Positions 14,561 to 55,222 of a stretch of DNA of 64,000 bases are shown one piece after another. Under the pieces are notes generated by a model. The model did not search any database and had not been told where the DNA came from. It worked only from the letters and a program-made list of their open reading frames with translations. Source of the stretch: Basidiobolus meristosporus CBS 931.73 (Eukaryota > Fungi > Basidiobolomycota); NCBI GenBank assembly GCA_002104905.1, contig MCFE01000466.1, forward strand, positions 6,334 through 70,333, written 5' to 3'. Position 1 is the stretch's first letter, and each line of letters starts with the position of its first letter. A program made the position numbers and the translations under genes.

Positions 14561-15099
14561 ACCCTGTGATAGATAACTTGGTCTTGCAGGTGGATCTTAC
14601 CCAGATCAGCCAGCAGGATCCTGTCAGGAGACCAATATATTTCTGGCTGCTCTGAATTAATGATCCTTAATATGATCATATGATAGAATCACAACAGCAT
14701 TTGGCTAATTTACCACCAAATAAAGTTAAAAAGATACCGGTTTTTTAGCAGTGGTTTGCCAAGGGTTGCATGGGAATCTTGTGGTCTGGAGGTGCTCTAT
14801 AACTATTGGAGTGAATCTAACTGGCCAGTACATCCAATTGTCTTATATGGCAAAGAACTTGGTGGTGTTTTAACAGTCTCATTGCAAGCCTTGGATGGCA
14901 GTATTACAGCAGTATAGCAGTCTACATCCAGTACTATTTAATGCTACTTTACCAATTTACCAAATGGTATTGCCTTTTTCTACATCCCCTGCGCAATTCA
15001 TGTTTTCCACTGTAGAAGCACCCCATTTTATTTGGTTGCTCACTACTACCTTGGGTATTCCATATATAGTTTGAATCAAAAAATATCAGGGCCCCCTTC

Positions 15100-17030
15100 T
15101 TACTAACCTTGCTAGATGCAAACACCTGTCACAGTTGACATATTTCTATCACCTCAGCTTTATGGCTTTTTAGTGTGATACTTTCAAAGTTGCCATCTAC
15201 TGTATTGCTGGTAACATATACATCTAGCAAACATATGTGTGGGTGCCACCACTTCTGCCCTGAATACCTCCTGAATATCTGCAAAGTACTTTCTGGTATT
15301 TGGCCAGTATATTCTTTCTGCCTGCTGAATTCTGGTCCCCCTTACTGGTGTGCTCTGGCTCTTGTTTGTGTGAGTCCTTACAGAATGGTGTAGAAATTGG
15401 CTTGTGACCAAGAGAAACCTGGCATACATTGTTTGAGTTTTCCTGATTAAGTTAGCTGCTTGTTGCACCCTACCCCATTTTGCATTACTTGACTCATTAC
15501 CCATGTATGGGGGCTACTAAGCTTCTGAATGCCATAGGCATGGGTGTCTCAATGTGTACCTCTATCCTTAGTATTTTCCAACTCCTCCTGCCTGCCTTCC
15601 ATGTGCCAAATTACCATGTCTGTGATGGACTTGAAGTTAATATTCTTGATGAGATTGAAATTTGATAGTACCTGCAACTTGACTCTTCTTCCTATTGCCC
15701 CACCTATCTGCTCCATAGGAAACTCCAAAATGATGATGCATGGACCAATTTTCTCCACACACTAAGCAAGATGGAATGAGAATGGATACAGTAGCAGCAG
15801 AGATCTACAAATTCAGCTTTATGTTGGTAGTACAGCTGCTCAAATCCCTTTGCAAACTCCTTGCACAACAGCTGTAGATGTGTCAAGTTGGCATTGGTGA
15901 TCTGCTTGTGGATAAATATTTCTACAATGTCCACATATGACTTCCATTTCTTCCAATGTACTCTTGGTAGGAATGGCTTCAGAACACCACTTGAATAACA
16001 CATATCCAGTTCATCCAGTCTTTTCACTTGTATTGTTGTATATGCATATAAATATTGATTGGAGCCCACAAAAAGGAGTATATCCCCCAGATCTCACACT
16101 TTCAACTGTAATTCTGTTTGTTGTACCCAGAAGAGCTGGCTATCTGGCTAATGGCTGAGGTACCTTCAATATAGATAACAATATGCGCTTTGGCATGATG
16201 GCCATTTAGTGTCATCCTGCTGGAATGCACACAAAATTCATCCAGCAATGGATATAGGCAGCTATCCAGGTTGGACAATAATTAAGGCCCAGATACCAGT
16301 GAGACTACCATCTGGTTTTGGCTCTGATATCATAAATAGGTGGCATATTCAGGTTGATGAGAATCAGTGGCCAGCAGGATTTGCTGGTAGAGTACCTGTT
16401 TGATGAGAATTCATCAAGTGCCAAGGCAAAGGCATGGCCATACATACTATCAAAGTAGCCCTTGTTTCTTAGCTGCTGTAGTATTTGCCATCACATATAT
16501 TGGATATGTTTGTGCACAATTGTTACTAAGTGGGCTACTCTGTAGCTTTGCAATGTTTGTCATACTGTGTACTTCTTTAAATGGGGTATTACTGGAATAT
16601 ATCCAGAGTGTGAACAATGTTTTCTGACAATGGTGGTGGATTCCTGATATGTTGGAAACCTTGCAAAGGTACCAGTTTCTGATGTGAATGCCATGCTAAT
16701 GCTAACACATGCTGGTATCAGGACAGTCTCTGGGCTGTATATTGCCAGCCACTTGACAGTTGTTCATTTATACCATGTACATGGTAAGTTGCATCCTGAG
16801 ATGATTATGGCTAGAAGATGTAGTAAATGCACAAGGCCTTCATTACTGATATTTTTATAATTACACCACTTCTCTGGCCACAACATTATATCACTCACCA
16901 GTTGATGGATTACTGGGCTCACTTAACTCCATAAAGTAACCTTGGCATTTTTTCTCACAGGTGTTGTATCATTGGCTATTGGGGTTTTGTTGGGCTAATG
17001 CAGAGTACTGTTGTTAGGATAGATAGGCTC
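15100..17030 (-). mobile_element. CACTA/tnp2 transposase remnants (inverted copies)
   Basis: 16640-16990 is the reverse complement of 8230-8590. 15750-16070 matches the downstream transposase segment also seen at 19860-20060. Confidence 0.55.
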
Positions 17031-37405: not shown

Positions 37406-38350
37406 GTTGGACAGTAGAGCGATGGAACAGATTACTGGGAGATAGGTTATTCTTGCGAGCGCTTCAGGAGGAACACGAACCCATTTATATGCAACAAGCA
37501 CCCGATCATTGATCCGCTCGTTAACATCTATTCATTGATCCAAAGCCTCCTGAGTCAACAGGTTGGTGGAGGGCACAAGCATAAGCTGAAGCTATTGGTG
37601 GATTATTAGCTGGGACGCGTTAATGCCGTAGTGATTGTTACATCATTGCCCAACGAATATATTGTTTCCTCAAGACAAAACTTTGTGGCATAAATTGGTT
37701 AATTTGAGTGAATTCGATTCATTCATTGATTCTAAGAATGAGCCAAGACCTTCTTCATAAAGGTTGAACAGGGCATTGTTATGTCTCACAAGCCCGATCA
37801 TACTGCCTAACTTGATACTAATTGAGTACGAGTCAAACACACCAAGGAGTACAAAGCAATGCTAGAGTCTTCACACCAAAGCGATTGTGTACCGACAATC
37901 AAAATAGACACTTGACTTATTACCATTAATATTCATCCATTTAAATAGACACTTGACTTATTGCCACTAATAGGATCAGCACAACAAACATTCCTGTCTG
38001 AAATCGGTCATTATCAAGTGTCACTATGGCATTGTCTAGTATGGTCTCTTTAATATGATGTGGATTGTGTGCAACTCGATGTTGCCGACATTTTCTGCAT
38101 CTGGTAGAGTCTCCATTGGCTCGATCATAATAAATGGTGTAACGATGAGTGTCGGTAATGAATCATTTCTATGCCGTTGTAGCTCAGCAGCGGCTTTGTC
38201 GTGCTACCAAACTTGCTATTTGCAATACACTCTTAGCCCATTTCATGATCAGCTTCTTGCATTCCTGACGTATTACAGCGATACTAAGTTTCAATTCCGG
38301 TATCAATTTTCGTCTACAGTATGTAAGGTGATTAAATTTGAATGAAGAGA

Positions 38351-38471
38351 AGCCACCCCTTAGAGGCGGCACAAAAAATTGTGCAACTCTCTTAAATGCT
38401 TCCCCTCCACGGAAATCTTTAGTAAAAGGCGAAAGATTTATCCGACTAGATGAAGAGGAAGCGAGAGTGAT
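38351..38471 (-). ncRNA. U5: U5 snRNA, copy A
   Basis: GGATAAATCTTTCGCCTTTTACTAAAGATTTCCGTGGAG (invariant loop I GCCTTTTAC), stem ACTCTC/GAGAGT, Sm site AATTTTTTG, 3' stem-loop GCCGCCTCTAAGGGGTGGC. Confidence 0.93.
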
Positions 38472-38811
38472 GGAGTTTGTCGATGTCTTGCATTTGGATT
38501 TTATGGACGAGGTCGTTGCAACAAAATTATGGGTTTCCTTTTACTGCAGCGTTCCATAGAAAACTATGTATGTTACGTGATTTCAAATTGCTCACACCAA
38601 CCAATCATAGAAATGTGTTTTTTCTACATGCTGTATTGAAAGTTTCAGACAAAGATGCCAAACATATTGACTGGTTTATGAAAAGATGATGTAGACGAAG
38701 CTAATGAAGGAACTGAATGTATCTTTCCGAGGACAACATGTCGTACATTCAGCTGACCCTTCTAATTACTGGATTATTCTTTTTCTTGTCTTAAGCTTTG
38801 ATTAAATGGAT

Positions 38812-38937
38812 GCCACTCACAAGGAGCAGCGAGTGAAAAATTCCTCAACTCTCGTAAATGCTCCTCCTCCACGGAAATCTTTAGTAAAAGGCGAAAGATT
38901 TATCCGACTGATTGAAGAAGAAGCGAGAGTGCGTAAT
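38812..38937 (-). ncRNA. U5: U5 snRNA variant, copy B
   Basis: Same loop I core; stems re-paired; Sm-like AATTTTTC; different 3' stem-loop CACTCGC-TGCTCCTT-GTGAGTG; TATAAA at -33..-28. Confidence 0.85.
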
Positions 38938-39537
38938 GCTCCTCTTGCACCTCTCCTCCCTCCATTTATACCATTCACCGAGAGATCGGTGGAGCTTATG
39001 GGTTGCCACGATTTTTCTGTTCCCTTTCACTTGCAACCTCGCCCCCCCCCACACATGCATCCCATCTATCTGCACCACCTGTCCATATCACCCCCGCCCC
39101 GCCCCATATTGAGTAATCGATAGGTAGCTGCATAGATCCATGCCATCAGCATGGACCACTTAAAGTGAGGGCATGGCCTCCTTTTTGCATTGCGCCGTGT
39201 CAAGTTGGGCAGCCAAACCGAATCAAACTAGCAATCGTAGTGGCGCTCACACCTGCAACCTCTAGTTGCATACAGTTGCATAGAACATCTCATCACCTCA
39301 ATCGCACCGCACTGCACCACACACCCCACTCCACCCCCTTCTGACCACCCAACATTTGACGAGCAGAGTACATTGCATCAGCCATTCCGGTTGGCAGTGT
39401 CCGTCACTAATCGAACACACACCAACAAAGCCAAAGTTACGACTGAAAGCATACCCGACCATGTTCCCAGCTAAACAATCATACAACAACCCAACTACCG
39501 AGTTCACATTCTTTCATTTCGATTTTGAGTAAAGAGA

Positions 39538-39659
39538 AGCCACCTCTGAGAGGCGGCACAAAAAAATTCGACAACTCTCTTGGATGTTTCCCCTCCACGG
39601 AAATCTTTAGTAAAAGGCGAAAGATTTATCCGACAAGATGAAGAGGAAACGAGAGTGAT
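39538..39659 (-). ncRNA. U5: U5 snRNA, copy C
   Basis: Loop I core, Sm site AATTTTTTTG, 3' stem-loop GCCGCCTCTCAGAGGTGGC; TATATA ~30 nt upstream. Confidence 0.94.
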
Positions 39660-39794
39660 GTGGGGGTAGTGTGGTGAATTGGGGGCTATATATCGCCACG
39701 GATCGGCCCATCAGAGCTTATGGTATTGGGATTTGCAATTTCCGAGTGCGAAAAAAAAGAACGAAAATTTGATAAATAAAAATATGAGCATTGC

Positions 39795-42105
39795 TCAAGA
39801 CTTTTGATCTATATTTATATCACAGGTGATGAATTCCACCGCATTCAGAAGGCTTAGACGGCTCAGGCTTTTGGGATGTTTAAAATTATCCGGTATCTCG
39901 CCACCGAGACATTCGACGTAGGTTTGGTATTTGATTAGTTCATGGAGGATGTATTGGGATTTACGTTCCCAGTTGGAGAATGCTTTGGCCATACTGCTTG
40001 GGAGGGAGGAGAACTGAGGGATATGGTAAGTGAGTGCAGGACTGGATGTGCACGGATGAAAGAAAACTTACGCGCATCTGCAGAACTGCGTGTAGGCTCA
40101 TATGTTTCTCGAGGTCTTGTTCCAACTCTGACACATGTCTTGCTAGGGATTCGTATTGTTGTATCTATGTACCGCGATTAGCATGGGCGTTATTTACCCC
40201 GACAAAGATATTTACCATGGGTAGCCCCGATTGGACCATGGGGTTGGCCGGTTCCGCCCAATCATGTAATCCGACGGCTTCCTCATGTTTACCACCCGCC
40301 GATGGTGGCGGCATTTGGTCAGAGCCCCATCCGTAGTCCACATTTGACACCGCACCAGACAATGGCTCCTTGCTTTCTTTGGCAGCCCAGAAGTTACATG
40401 TTTTGACCCACTCCTGAACCTCATCGCTGCTTCGTACTTGAAACAGATACACTCCGCCATTGCTCATTTGTAGGGCGAATACGTGCGGCCTAGAGCTGGA
40501 GTGGCCGGGAGGAGGGAGGCCCGAGGCCAACGTATGGCGCAGGCTAAGTCTTCCCAATTGATTGTTCGTTTCTTTCAAGACTTCGGGGCCAAGCTTCCCT
40601 CCCTTCTCAGCCTTGTACATCCGAAACTCTCCTTTGTCTACCACAATGAAGCAGTCCCTCCATTGTCGGTTCGGGGCTTTTTTCCCGGCTTTTTCGAACA
40701 GATGTTTCCGTGTCACATAGCCCAGCTTGGTATATCGAACGCTCTCTTCGTCAATTGTACACAGCGTGACCCCGTTGCGGACGGCCGAATCGTCCTCAAC
40801 GTCACTGTATACGGTGGAGCAGCTTAGCTGGGTGGAGCTTCGGCAAGAGGCATCCTCATTCACCTGTAATACCATGGGATCAGTTGGCAAGCTGTGACGG
40901 ATGGGGTATCAAAGCTACATACACTTGAGGGGCTGGAGCATAACGAGTTGTTCCGTTTCTTATCCCTGTTCGATTTAGATCTTTGGAACCTGAAGCCAAA
41001 AGTGGAATTGGTTGGGCTCTCTGAGGTCGAGGTGGTGGTTGGTTGCGGGACGGGGGTATGTTTAATTGAAGTGTATAGTTCCTAAAGCGAAACATTCATT
41101 ACTCACGGGTTCCCCCGGATCAGGGATACCCTCGAGCTTACCTTCAGCAACTCGGTCAAGGCTTCTTCTCGGAAGAAGGGCTTGCTGCTTTGTGTTTGCT
41201 CTGTATCGCTGGAAGTGTGTGCGGAGCTCAAGGAGCTGACCTCGGAGGAGCTTTCATGGTCCTTGCTCACCCGGTTGGTGGATTTAATGGTGGCCAGCGT
41301 GTTTCTGACGAAATGGTTTTTACTGATCCTGTGGTGATTCTGGGCCACATGGAGGTCCGTATTCAGCAGCAGCACCGAGTATACAATGGTGTGAAGCACG
41401 TCTGTGTCGGAACATTTTAATCGACGTGTTTTGCCAATGGGATGCAAAATTCGTTACCCCAATCTGGTATATTTCGATCCCGATTGCACAGCCAGTATCG
41501 CTCAGCGAAGGCGGACAGGATGCGATCAATCATCTGGGACTCCCCATGCAATAGCAAATGGGAGCAAAAATATCTAAACCATTGAAAGATTCAGAACAGG
41601 GCGATATTTGTGGTCCTTCCAGTCAAGGCTTACCTAAACGCCTGCTCTAACCTCATGCCAGTGAAGTCAAAGTTTTCCATATATTTACGCAAGACGACCC
41701 GGTTCCATTGCTCACTTAAACCTAACAAAGGTTAATTTCCTTTGGCGAGTTGACCGTAATGAACGTGGGTACTGACGGTTTTCCCAAGATTTCGGCAATC
41801 TCACTCATTTGGCTTTCCTCGGTTTGTAAGAACAATTGCTTTGCTAGCTTGTCCGACTCATCTTCACTCTCCGCTATCTCCATATTGATTGCTTCGGCTT
41901 CAACTGGGATGAAGGCCAAGGGTGGCGCTGGCTTGGTTAGACTTGTCTTTCCATTTTTATAGCTAGGAGCTCGTTGAAAGCGGAACAGACTGCTTGCTCT
42001 TCTTTCTCGCTTTGGCTCAAGCAAATGGGGAAACATCTCAGTATGGAAGAAATTCGAGGAGGATTTCTGCACCGAGCATGGTTGTTCCCGAAAGTTAGTC
42101 GCCAT
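39795..42105 (-). CDS. Sec7-domain plus PH-domain ARF guanine-nucleotide exchange factor (Syt1/Yel1-like), multi-exon
   Basis: Sec7: YMENFDFTGMRLEQAFR..LHGESQMIDRILSAFAERY..VLHTIVYSVLLLNTDLHVA. PH: GYVTRKH..RQWRDCF..LRHTLA..RPHVFALQ..YLFQ..EWVKTCNFWAA. C-terminal coiled coil AFSNWERKSQYILHELIKY. The start codon is uncertain. Confidence 0.88.
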
Positions 42106-42796
42106 ATGGGTTCCTTCTGTATGGTTCGAGTTAGCTGCAACACCAATGATTTCTTGAATAAGCAATCGGGTTTTATCGACCTTGCGCTGGGGAATCTCCG
42201 CTACTTAGCCAGCAACTTGAGCAAAGTATTTTGATTACAATACTTGGCCAAATGGTTAGTATCAGAAGTGATATAGCGATGGGAAATGCGATGGGTTTAT
42301 GGAAAGGAACGCAGGCAAGGAAGGATGGTGGTATAGATTAGAAGAAAGAGTTGAAATATGGTTGCTAGATACAGTCTTCTTCATGAATGTTCACTCCTGT
42401 CGATCACATAAATACTTATTCCGTCCCAATCCATCAGGCTTGTGTATTTTACCGAAGCCAAAATAGAAAACATAACAAGGTTCTCCAAGGGGGTGCGGAT
42501 CAATAAGACCTGCAGGCGATTAGTGGAAGGGACCGTTGGATGTCGATTATTTTCTATGGCCAACTCTCAATGTTGTTGAGGAACCATTGATGTGAGTGAT
42601 ATTTGGCTATATTGGCATAGAATCCATGGTTTCTAGATAGGATAAGAGCATACTAATTACCCCCGCATGAATGGACGGATCATTCAACATAGGGATGGGA
42701 TAGCGATGCATTGCTGAAATTGCTTCTTGCATCGATTTTATTGTAATTTGAATCGCCGGTCAAAAATTCCTCTATTCATTAATTCTAATACTTATA

Positions 42797-42833
42797 CCAT
42801 AAGCTCTGGTGGGCCGATCCGTGGCCATATATA
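42797..42833 (+). promoter_or_regulatory. snRNA promoter: PSE-like CCATAAGCTC (-64..-55) plus TATATA (-33..-28)
   Basis: The same motif and spacing occur upstream of copy E (CCATAAGCTC 43523-43532, TATAAA 43553-43558). Copy A has CCATAA at about -61 and CATAAAA at -34. Confidence 0.65.
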
Positions 42834-42860
42834 GCCCCCAATTCACCACACTACCCCCAC

Positions 42861-42982
42861 ATCACTCTCGTTTCCTCTTCATCTTGTCGGATAAATCTTT
42901 CGCCTTTTACTAAAGATTTCCGTGGAGGGGAAACATCCAAGAGAGTTGTCGAATTTTTTTGTGCCGCCTCTCAGAGGTGGCT
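42861..42982 (+). ncRNA. U5: U5 snRNA, copy D
   Basis: ATCACTCTCGTTTCCTCTTC..GCCTTTTAC..GGAGGGGAAAC..GAGAGT..AATTTTTTTG plus 3' stem-loop. Confidence 0.94.
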
Positions 42983-43585
42983 TCTCTTTACTCAAAATCG
43001 AAATGAAAGAATATGACCTCGGTAGTTCGGTAGTTGTATGATTGTTTAGCTGGGAACATGGTCGGGTATGCTTTCAGTCGTAACTTTGGCTCTGTTGGTG
43101 TGTGTTCGATTAGTGACGGCCACTGCCAACCGGAATGGCTGATGCAACGTACTCTCCTCGTTGAATGTTAGGTGGTCAGAAGGGGGTGGAGTGGGGTGTG
43201 GTGTGGTGCGGTGCGGTGCGATTGAGGTGATGAGATGTTCTATGCAACTGTAGGCAACTAGAGGTTGCAGGTGTGAGCGCCACTACGATTGCTAGTTTGA
43301 TTCGGTTTGGCTGCCCAACTTGACACGGCGCAATGCAAAAAGGAGGCCATGCCCCCACTTTAAGTGGTCCATGCTGATGGCATGGATCTATGCAGCTACC
43401 TATCGATTACTCAATATGGGGCGGGGCGGGGGTGATATGGACAGGTGGTGCAGATAGATGGGATGCATGTGTGGGGGGGGGGCGAGGTTGCAAGTGAAAG
43501 GGAACAGAAAAATCGTGGCAACCCATAAGCTCCACCGATCTCTCGTGAATGGTATAAATGGAGGGAGGAGAGGCGCAAGAGGAGC

Positions 43586-43711
43586 ATCACGCACTCTCGC
43601 TTCTTCTTCAATCAGTCGGATAAATCTTTCGCCTTTTACTAAAGATTTCCGTGGAGGAGGAGCATTTACGAGAGTTAAGGAATTTTTCACTCGCTGCTCC
43701 TTGTGAGTGGC
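43586..43711 (+). ncRNA. U5: U5 snRNA variant, copy E
   Basis: Inverted near-copy of B; loop I intact, Sm-like AATTTTTC, alternative 3' stem-loop. Confidence 0.85.
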
Positions 43712-43827
43712 ATCCATTTAATCAAAGCTTAAGAGACAATGATAATCAATAATTTCAAGGAGTTGACAAAATACGAAGGATTTATTCAAACAGTTGTCAG
43801 GATTAATATTCAATAGATTGCAAGTGA

Positions 43828-49628: not shown

Positions 49629-50357
49629 CTAGAGGCTCGAGAACACCTTGATGGCATCCTCGGCGGTGGATCTTGCGCTTGCTGGGTTAGCTCCGGTGAC
49701 AACTCGGCCGTCAGTTTGCGTGAAGTCGGCAAATGGAGTAGGTGGTGCCACGTACTCGGCCCCAACGGCAGCCGCTCCTTCTTCGATTGTAGCCACATTG
49801 GCTGACTTGATAATGTCAAGCAGGCTCAACATCACCTCACCCTCGGTAGTGAACCCGGTGACCTTCTTGCCAGCGATGATGGATTTGCCTGTGGTGCTGT
49901 CAACGATGCCAGGGAGAATGGCTGGCCCATGGCACACGGCTGAAACAACCCCTCCACGCTTGTATATGTCCTCGGCAATATGCTGCAGGCCACGAGCCGT
50001 GGGGTAGTCCCACAAGGTCGCGTGCCCGGCAGAAGCAAAGAATAGGCCATAGTCGGCAGGGTTGAGGTCCGACGCCTTGCGAAGCTGTGAGTTCAGTTTG
50101 ACATTGAAAGGATGCTCTGGATCGTCTAGCACTTTTTGGTCATCCTCGGTGAGAAAGTCCTTCGACAAGGAGTGCTCGTCCACTCCATAAGTGCCAGTCT
50201 CGGAGGCGAAGTCGACCTCGAACCCGGCCTCGACCAGTGCTTCGTATGGATGCAACGCTTCCGTATAGAAGAGCCCAGTCTTGCTGCCATTGGCGTAGAA
50301 GGGCTCGTTATAGCTGGTGATGGCAAGTAGTGCTCTGCGTGGAAGATTGGCTGGCAT
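49629..50357 (-). CDS. HSP31: DJ-1/PfpI family glyoxalase III / Hsp31, copy 1 (242 aa)
   Basis: TGLFYTEALHP (catalytic E), ASAGHATLWDYP, AVCHGP (nucleophile C-H), VVTGANPASA; intronless. Confidence 0.93.
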   Translation of the reverse strand: MPANLPRRALLAITSYNEPFYANGSKTGLFYTEALHPYEALVEAGFEVDFASETGTYGVDEHSLSKDFLTEDDQKVLDDPEHPFNVKLNSQLRKASDLNPADYGLFFASAGHATLWDYPTARGLQHIAEDIYKRGGVVSAVCHGPAILPGIVDSTTGKSIIAGKKVTGFTTEGEVMLSLLDIIKSANVATIEEGAAAVGAEYVAPPTPFADFTQTDGRVVTGANPASARSTAEDAIKVFSSL

Positions 50358-54493: not shown

Positions 54494-55222
54494 CTAGAGA
54501 CTCGAGAACGCCTTGATGGCATCCTCGGCGGTGGATCTTGCGCTTGCTGGGTTAGCTCCGGTGACAACTCGGCCGTCAGTTTGCGTGAAGTCGGCAAATG
54601 GAGTAGGTGGTGCCACGTACTCGGCCCCAACAGCAGCCGCTCCTTCCTCGATTGTAGCCACATTGGCTGACTTGATAATGTCAAGTAGGCTCAACATCAC
54701 CTCACCCTCGGTAGTGAACCCGGTGACCTTCTTGCCAGCGATGATGGATTTGCCTGTGGTGCTGTCAACGATGCCAGGGAGAATGGCTGGCCCATGGCAC
54801 ACGGCTGAAACAACCCCTCCACGCTTGTATATGTCCTCGGCAATATGCTGCAGGCCACGAGCCGTAGGGTAATCCCACAGGGTCGCGTGCCCGGCAGAAG
54901 CAAAGAATAGGCCATAGTCGGCAGGGTTGAGGTCCGACGCCTTGCGAAGCTGTGAGTTCAGTTTGACATTGAAAGGATGCTCTGGATCGTCTAGCACTTT
55001 TTGGTCATCCTCGGTGAGAAAGTCTTTCGACAAGGAGTGCTCGTCCACTCCGTAAGTGCCAGTCTCGGAGGCGAAGTCGACCTCGAACCCGGCCTCGACC
55101 AGTGCTTCGTATGGGTGCAACGCTTCCGTATAGAAGAGCCCAGTCTTGCTGCCATTGGCGTAGAAGGGCTCGTTATAGCTGGTGATGGCAAGTAGTGCTC
55201 TGCGTGGAAGATTGGCTGGCAT
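54494..55222 (-). CDS. HSP31: Glyoxalase III / Hsp31, copy 2
   Basis: Identical protein except V->A near the C-terminus. Confidence 0.93.
   Translation of the reverse strand: MPANLPRRALLAITSYNEPFYANGSKTGLFYTEALHPYEALVEAGFEVDFASETGTYGVDEHSLSKDFLTEDDQKVLDDPEHPFNVKLNSQLRKASDLNPADYGLFFASAGHATLWDYPTARGLQHIAEDIYKRGGVVSAVCHGPAILPGIVDSTTGKSIIAGKKVTGFTTEGEVMLSLLDIIKSANVATIEEGAAAVGAEYVAPPTPFADFTQTDGRVVTGANPASARSTAEDAIKAFSSL

Follow-up and report, generated by a model that had tools for sequence, protein, structure and literature searches.

A divergent, probably functional U5 snRNA paralogue in a palindromic gene array of the fungus Basidiobolus meristosporus

A stretch of 64,000 nucleotides (nt) from Basidiobolus meristosporus CBS 931.73 (contig MCFE01000466.1, positions 6,334 to 70,333; hereafter the window) carries five genes for the U5 small nuclear RNA (snRNA), here named A to E, two of which (B and E) form a divergent variant class. 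On balance, B/E is probably a functional, species-specific and fast-evolving U5 paralogue that was duplicated by a palindrome and is redundant with the other copies. The window holds part of a conserved U5 array, whose genes point outward on both sides of a gene for an Arf guanine nucleotide exchange factor (ArfGEF) with Sec7 and PH domains. B and E represent one paralogue, copied in both palindrome arms, that most likely derived from an A-like gene and then diverged fast. Selection would have kept loop I, stem Ic, internal loop 2 (IL2), stem Ia and the pairing of stem Ib, together with a 3′ hairpin that is still stable and the promoter, a proximal sequence element (PSE) with a TATA box. Since the core, the pairing, the hairpin and the promoter appear to have been kept by selection, B/E is most likely transcribed and built into a working U5 small nuclear ribonucleoprotein (snRNP), broadly redundant with A and C/D; transcription, RNA start, Sm binding and redundancy are deduced here from the DNA.

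U5 genes and sequence classes

The whole window was scanned with the Rfam covariance model of U5 (RF00020; gathering score 40 bits). Five matches of 79.0-91.6 bits were obtained, all over model positions 1-117 of 117, and these are five genuine U5 spliceosomal RNA genes:

38351-38469, minus strand: U5 gene A, RF00020 91.6 bits; class 1; Sm site AAUUUUUUG; 8-bp 3′ hairpin
38811-38930, minus strand: U5 gene B, RF00020 79.0 bits; variant class; left palindrome arm
39538-39657, minus strand: U5 gene C, RF00020 91.6 bits; class 2; left arm
42863-42982, plus strand: U5 gene D, RF00020 91.6 bits; class 2; right arm
43593-43712, plus strand: U5 gene E, RF00020 80.8 bits; variant class; right arm

A preliminary description of the window, made from its letters, had placed five U5 genes of three sequence classes at these positions, and all five were recovered by the model. 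The three classes are A, C and D (whose RNAs are identical), and B and E, which differ within the Rfam-defined RNA by a single G/A at 43677. A second difference between B and E, at 43588, falls inside the RNA if the start lies at ~43586, and the two differences do not covary. The RNAs are ~120 nt long, and all of them adopt the U5 shape when folded, with z-scores of -3.4 to -4.5 relative to shuffled sequences. No further U5 copy or remnant was found by a permissive scan of 30-52 kb of the window, and a spurious antisense open reading frame (ORF) over B gave no match in an exact look-up.

Conserved core and compensated stems

Conservation was followed across 13 copies, the five of the window and eight from the syntenic locus of Basidiobolus ranarum described below. 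Loop I, stem Ic and IL2 (alignment columns 30-71) are invariant in all of them. Loop I, taken as GCCUUUUAC in an 11-nt loop closed by stem Ic, is found as CGCCUUUUACU on an 8-bp stem Ic, identical in 13/13 copies. These elements (loop I, stem Ic and IL2) are the known contacts of U5 with exons and Prp8. The long stem I with internal loop 1 (IL1) and IL2 is also present, with 100% pairing in stem Ib and 98.6% in stem Ia. Overall, 99.5% of pair cells hold standard pairs, compared with 48-58% when the partners are slid against each other, and four pairs are changed on both sides among the 13 copies, two in stem Ib and two in the 3′ hairpin.

The divergence of B/E leaves this framework standing. 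Compared with the consensus of the other 11 copies, gene B shows 25 differences. The 35-nt core formed by loop I, stem Ic and IL2 contains none of them (P ~2e-4 if randomly placed), and stem Ia is free of them as well. In stem Ib, where A and C/D are distinguished by one compensatory swap (C-G versus U-A), the B/E strands CUUCUUCUUC/GGAGGAGGAG are paired throughout; the four stem Ib changes of B/E make two compensated pairs, a C-G to U-A swap and a U-A to U-G change. The preliminary description had stated that loop I and its stem are kept exactly, that A and C/D differ by a compensatory change in stem Ib and that stem Ib is re-paired in B/E; all of this holds in the five window copies, and the covariation that it had proposed to look for is seen in the four doubly changed pairs and the pairing frequencies given above. 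The B/E changes lie in outer stem Ib, IL1, the linker, the tail of the Sm site and the 3′ stem-loop, all of them regions that differ between animal U5 paralogues too. In fly and mouse, U5 paralogues vary mainly at the 3′ end (PMC4291461).

Sm site and 3′ stem-loop

Sm sites were compared with the consensus AAUUUUUGG, that is, R-A-U4-6-G-R followed by a 3′ stem-loop, and such a stem-loop is seen in every U5 copy. The site of A (AAU6G) lies inside the consensus and that of C/D (AAU7G) is one U over the U4-6 range, while B/E reads AAUUUUUC (AAUUUUUCAC), with the heptad AUUUUUC and no G following the U run, just as the preliminary description had read it. Within B. meristosporus the G is present in A and C/D and absent from B/E. 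At the B. ranarum locus, 8/8 copies have no G immediately following the U run (AAUUUUUUCCUUG, AAUUUUUCCUAG and similar; AAU5-7, then C). SmD1 contacts the G 3′ of the U run through an arginine, the loss of which has no effect on growth (PMC5311505), and 18 of 21 single substitutions in the heptad of yeast U5, AUUUUUU, are tolerated (Jones and Guthrie, 1990, cited in PMC5311505). On these two grounds a G-less site is plausibly functional, and its occurrence in all U5 copies of the B. ranarum locus fits the tolerance found by yeast genetics. Since the G-less site is the rule in B. ranarum U5, it does not mark a special assembly route. The suggestion that B/E might follow a different snRNP assembly finds no support, the G-less Sm site being the norm at the B. 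ranarum locus, where the B/E class itself is absent.

The 3′ hairpin of B/E had been described as completely different but fully paired. The pairing stands, as in the fold of lowest energy an 8-bp stem in a shifted register (CACUCGC/GUGAGUG) begins where the U run ends and abuts the Sm site; the hairpin is not unrelated to the others, though, because its 3′ strand (GUGAGUGGC) is homologous to that of the other copies. The folding energy is -10.6 kcal/mol. In a simulation of drift, in which the hairpin of A or C received 13-14 random changes in 20,000 trials, the mean was -3.2 kcal/mol and 0.9% of trials kept -10.6 (P ~0.009).

A separate observation concerns C/D, in whose lowest-energy fold (39536-39659, minus strand) stem Ia is replaced by a 10-bp hairpin, AAGAGAGUUG/CGAAUUUUUU, that sequesters the Sm site. 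Human pre-snRNAs form compact structures overlapping their Sm sites (PMC10584915), which this fold resembles.

Promoter motifs and RNA start

Each U5 gene of the window is accompanied by PSE-like, TATA and 3′-box-like motifs, as follows:

38527-38535, minus strand: PSE-like AACCCATAA of A (motif match)
38996-39004, minus strand: PSE-like AACCCATAA of B (motif match, upstream of B)
43520-43528, plus strand: PSE-like AACCCATAA of E (motif match)
39716-39724, minus strand: PSE-like ACCATAAGC of C, one base shorter (motif)
42796-42804, plus strand: PSE-like ACCATAAGC of D, one base shorter (motif)
38498-38504, minus strand: TATA box of A, 35 nt before CACUCUCG
38964-38970, minus strand: TATAAAT box of B, 39 nt before CACUCUCG
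39686-39692, minus strand: TATA box of C, 35 nt before CACUCUCG
42828-42834, plus strand: TATA box of D, 35 nt before CACUCUCG
43553-43559, plus strand: TATAAAT box of E, 39 nt before CACUCUCG
38796-38806, minus strand: 3′-box-like TTTAATCAAAG after B (motif from downstream alignment)
43717-43727, plus strand: 3′-box-like TTTAATCAAAG after E (motif from downstream alignment)
39523-39533 after C, 42987-42997 after D and 38336-38346 after A: 3′-box-like motifs related to TTTAATCAAAG (TTTACTCAAAA, TTCATTCAAAT)

The 64 kb contain three exact copies of AACCCATAA, which precede the U5 bodies of A, B and E by 62-72 nt, and the motif also stands upstream of all eight B. ranarum copies, in its consensus form in most of them. 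The composite ACCCAYAR-N14-26-TATAWA is found in the window only at B and E, with 0.05 occurrences expected. A TTAYTNCAAA-like motif follows all 13 genes of the two species 5-15 nt downstream. All 13 copies thus show, as motifs, the unit of an snRNA gene transcribed by RNA polymerase II: (A)ACCCAYAR at -53 to -69, a TATA-like box at -35 to -39, and TTAYTNCAAA. By motif match, the promoter of B/E is the most canonical of the five, and the retention of promoter and 3′ signals that had been ascribed to B/E extends to the PSE, TATA and 3′-box-like motifs alike. As an aside, C/D combine highest-scoring U5 bodies with the least canonical promoter, the PSE being one base short.

The spacing between PSE and TATA box is 29-30 nt in B/E and ~26 nt in the others; a TATA box at -39, as in B/E, also occurs in 2/8 B. 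ranarum copies. In copies of both species a purine lies ~33 nt past the first T of the TATA box, and this is an A either 2 nt before CACUCUCG (TATA at -35) or 6 nt before it (TATA at -39). B/E would accordingly be expected to start at the A 6 nt before CACUCUCG, at ~38937 in B and ~43586 in E, giving a predicted leader ~4 nt longer (AUUACG/AUCACG plus CACUCUCG). The 5′ end 3-4 nt longer that the preliminary description had reported is therefore supported by the TATA spacing of 39 versus 35 nt, with the start itself a prediction. On folding, the predicted extension of B and E adds no pairing.

Inverted repeat around the Sec7-PH gene

A repeat search and domain assignments delimit the palindrome:

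38789-39733: left inverted-repeat arm, bounded by the PSE-like element of C and by a point ~22 nt beyond the 3′ end of B (repeat search)
42787-43734: right inverted-repeat arm, bounded by the PSE-like element of D and by a point ~22 nt beyond the 3′ end of E (repeat search)
~39800-42200, minus strand: Sec7 and PH_9 (ArfGEF) gene in the palindrome spacer, with introns; limits approximate

The preliminary description had not noted this inverted repeat, whose arms are ~945 bp long and 96-100% complementary, with B and C in one and D and E in the other, so that each arm consists of two complete snRNA gene units and their spacer. The palindrome spacer is ~3 kb. Its gene was assigned by Pfam on single exon ORFs, with Sec7 in ORF 41103-41447 and PH_9 in ORF 40165-40890. 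Because they lie in the two arms of an inverted repeat, B and E are one variant present twice, and their agreement, like that of C and D, is not independent evidence.

Global alignment of the arms gives 25 differing sites in 949 columns, indels among them, and only one of the 25 lies inside the 240 nt of U5 bodies (binomial P ~0.006, or ~0.013 without three edge sites). Mis-assembly of the inverted repeat, which would make the second B and C copies an artefact, is hardly credible. The arms are highly identical and the contig is a 70-kb piece of a draft assembly, as an artefact would have it, but the 25 differences include indels and the divergence is graded, and in the independent assembly of B. 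ranarum the orthologous gene is likewise flanked on either side by U5 arrays that face outward. Arm divergence is uneven, at ~4% in the spacer half next to C/D (window 39315-39530) and 0-1% in the half next to B/E (38979-39322), a pattern that may be as expected from patchy arm-to-arm gene conversion.

The syntenic locus of Basidiobolus ranarum

The corresponding locus of B. ranarum lies on contig JASJQH010000181.1 (here L001), with its U5 array at L001:7761-16049. The 728-amino-acid ORF adjoining the U5 array of the window, which has an exact match on contig MCFE01000466.1 of assembly GCA_002104905.1, has a B. ranarum orthologue with 45% identity, and the syntenic block comprises a GTPase gene, a 725-amino-acid gene, the Sec7-PH gene and a 296-amino-acid gene. 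Within the collection searched, homologues of both flanking proteins were found in B. ranarum and B. meristosporus only. Rfam detected eight U5 genes. Three precede the Sec7-PH gene on the minus strand and five follow it on the plus strand, each directed away from that gene; this outward-facing layout is shared with the window, where the order is E, D / Sec7-PH / C, B, A. Judging from gene order, the layout of the U5 array is conserved in synteny between the two Basidiobolus species. In B. meristosporus, contig MCFE01001048, which carries a paralogue of the neighbouring 297-amino-acid gene, has no U5 in 14.8 kb of its 18.8 kb, and patterns specific to B/E or typical of Basidiobolus U5 gave no match in metagenome contigs.

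Every feature that sets B/E apart recurs singly in ordinary B. ranarum copies: the G-less Sm site, the TATA box at -39 and a C-to-U change in the 5′ strand of stem Ib, the last in 1/8 copies, where it is still paired as U-G. The array also contains a decayed U5 pseudogene (L001 ~14851-14915) with 77% identity, loop I mutated to GCUUUUUAC and broken stems, and its surroundings (L001:14826-14935) have no Sm-like U run downstream and no properly placed TATA box. This pseudogene shows what neutral decay looks like in such arrays, and B/E does not resemble it. Another B. ranarum copy (15928-16049) has its first 38 nt tandemly duplicated just upstream (L001:15890-15965), with PSE and TATA box spaced for the first repeat; it would probably make a 5′-extended, aberrant U5, or alternatively the duplication may be an assembly slip.

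Origin and status of the B/E class

B/E is 75-81% identical to every other copy, while the other copies share 80-96% with one another. In a maximum-likelihood tree, the B/E branch has a length of 0.29 changes per column, the median being 0.03, and B/E is weakly sister to A (60/90). B/E and A have in common a CAUUUA bulge and, at position 2 of stem Ib, a C-G pair. An A-like gene of the B. meristosporus lineage is the most likely source of the B/E class, and the branch lengths suggest that the class diverged about ten times faster than its sister copies. A division of the copies by species is consistent with the tree, and such grouping may reflect concerted evolution or independent turnover.

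A working paralogue redundant with A and C/D remains the favoured interpretation, although several observations weigh against it. In B/E, the final nucleotides of the Sm heptad are part of the 3′ hairpin predicted at lowest energy, an overlap that could impair loading of the Sm ring. The long branch of B/E could equally reflect relaxed constraint, and short-tract gene conversion from functional neighbours could in principle keep the core unchanged. In addition, none of the eight U5 genes at the syntenic locus of B. ranarum, the one related genome compared, belongs to the B/E class; the preliminary description had named absence from related genomes as one half of what would speak against its reading, and that half is what was found. 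These points lend themselves to the alternative that B/E is non-functional or on its way out, a relaxed redundant copy that is silent or degraded by snRNA quality control, with a core left intact merely through recent gene conversion or too little time. The branch ~10x that of its sisters, the lowest Rfam scores of the five, a heptad that ends in C with no G next to it and is partly sequestered in the hairpin, and the absence of the class from the B. ranarum locus would all suit this account; dead copies do occur in such arrays, as the L001 pseudogene attests, and human variants with deviant Sm sites have lower Sm occupancy and stability (PMC8457000). It is nevertheless unlikely, given that 0/25 changes fall in the core (P ~2e-4), that stem Ib carries a compensatory C-G to U-A swap, that the 3′ hairpin has stayed stable against the expectation of random drift (P ~0.009), and that the PSE, TATA and 3′-box motifs are intact and nearest the consensus of the five. 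Moreover, all eight B. ranarum U5 genes are G-less, and at least some of them are necessarily functional.

The preliminary description had gone further and proposed a selected, functional isoform. The clean core, the compensated stem Ib, the hairpin and the promoter lend indirect support to the first part of that proposal; a distinct isoform finds no support. Specialisation of B/E, be it through expression specific to a stage or condition, altered assembly of the Sm core or a preference for one spliceosome, would draw on B/E being the most divergent class (75-81% identity) and yet structurally intact, on a promoter with different spacing (PSE-TATA 29-30 versus ~26 nt, with the TATA box 4 nt further upstream), on the palindrome keeping both copies, and on the regulated U5 isoforms known in fly, mouse and human (PMC4291461, PMC8457000). 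Were B/E specialised, its longer 5′ leader and hairpin-abutting Sm site would alter its assembly or stability. However, no orthologous class is found at the syntenic B. ranarum locus, each odd feature occurs separately among ordinary copies there (G-less 8/8; TATA at -39 2/8), and the elements contacting exons and Prp8 are unchanged, from which no altered substrate recognition is expected; specialisation is accordingly judged quite unlikely. Still more improbable, as far as the gene sequences go, is a U5 dedicated to a life stage (conidia, zygospores or yeast-like cells) or incorporated preferentially into the minor spliceosome. There is no link from B/E to the minor spliceosome in these data. 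To our knowledge, B. meristosporus is the fungus richest in minor introns, and we know of no organism that uses a spliceosome-specific U5.

Other features of the window

Outside the U5 array, two tandem DJ-1/PfpI paralogues of 242 amino acids each (49629-50357 and 54494-55222, minus strand) lie next to a tRNA cluster at 51-64 kb. The cluster contains five tRNA genes, including two for tRNA-Arg(TCG), each with 57.0 bits in Rfam.

Comparison with known U5 systems

Sontheimer and Steitz are said to have described variants of human U5 snRNA in 1992, and Chen et al. reportedly described Drosophila U5 isoforms in 2005. The human variants (U5A, B, D, E, F and minor ones) diverge in their 3′ stem-loops; they are expressed, bind Sm proteins and differ in their regulation (PMC8457000). 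The Basidiobolus genes resemble this family in being multi-copy, in conserving loop I and stem I, in varying near the 3′ stem-loop and in keeping snRNA promoter signals; expression and Sm binding have been demonstrated for the human variants, whereas the Basidiobolus copies are known here as genes. Drosophila and mouse likewise have several U5 paralogues with a variable region at the 3′ end and without stable orthologous groups between species (Lu and Matera, 2014; PMC4291461), which is matched by the missing B/E orthologue in B. ranarum. Developmental switching is documented for fly and mouse U5, in contrast to Basidiobolus, which is represented by sequence alone, and the fly genes are dispersed, whereas those of Basidiobolus form a palindromic array around one protein gene.

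Among fungi, the U5 of Saccharomyces cerevisiae (SNR7) is encoded by a single copy and is a much larger RNA, while the ~120 nt of Basidiobolus U5 correspond to the size of animal U5. The tolerance of the SNR7 heptad AUUUUUU to most single substitutions makes AUUUUUC a plausible working Sm site. A non-canonical Sm site is also known from U7 snRNA (AAUUUGUCUAG), in which the deviant sequence specifies a different Sm/Lsm ring (PMC7026596). The U7 deviation lies within the U run and is animal-wide, whereas B/E deviates only at or after the seventh position, in a manner that is the norm in B. ranarum, and nothing in its sequence points to an alternative Sm ring. In many fungi each snRNA has a single locus (PMC8457000), so that a heterogeneous U5 array is uncommon for a fungus without being new in kind. 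The result, which is descriptive, is what one would expect of a multi-copy snRNA family: B/E is ordinary variation of an snRNA gene family, unusual only in being fungal, and B. meristosporus could serve as a fungal system in which to ask whether snRNA paralogues matter.

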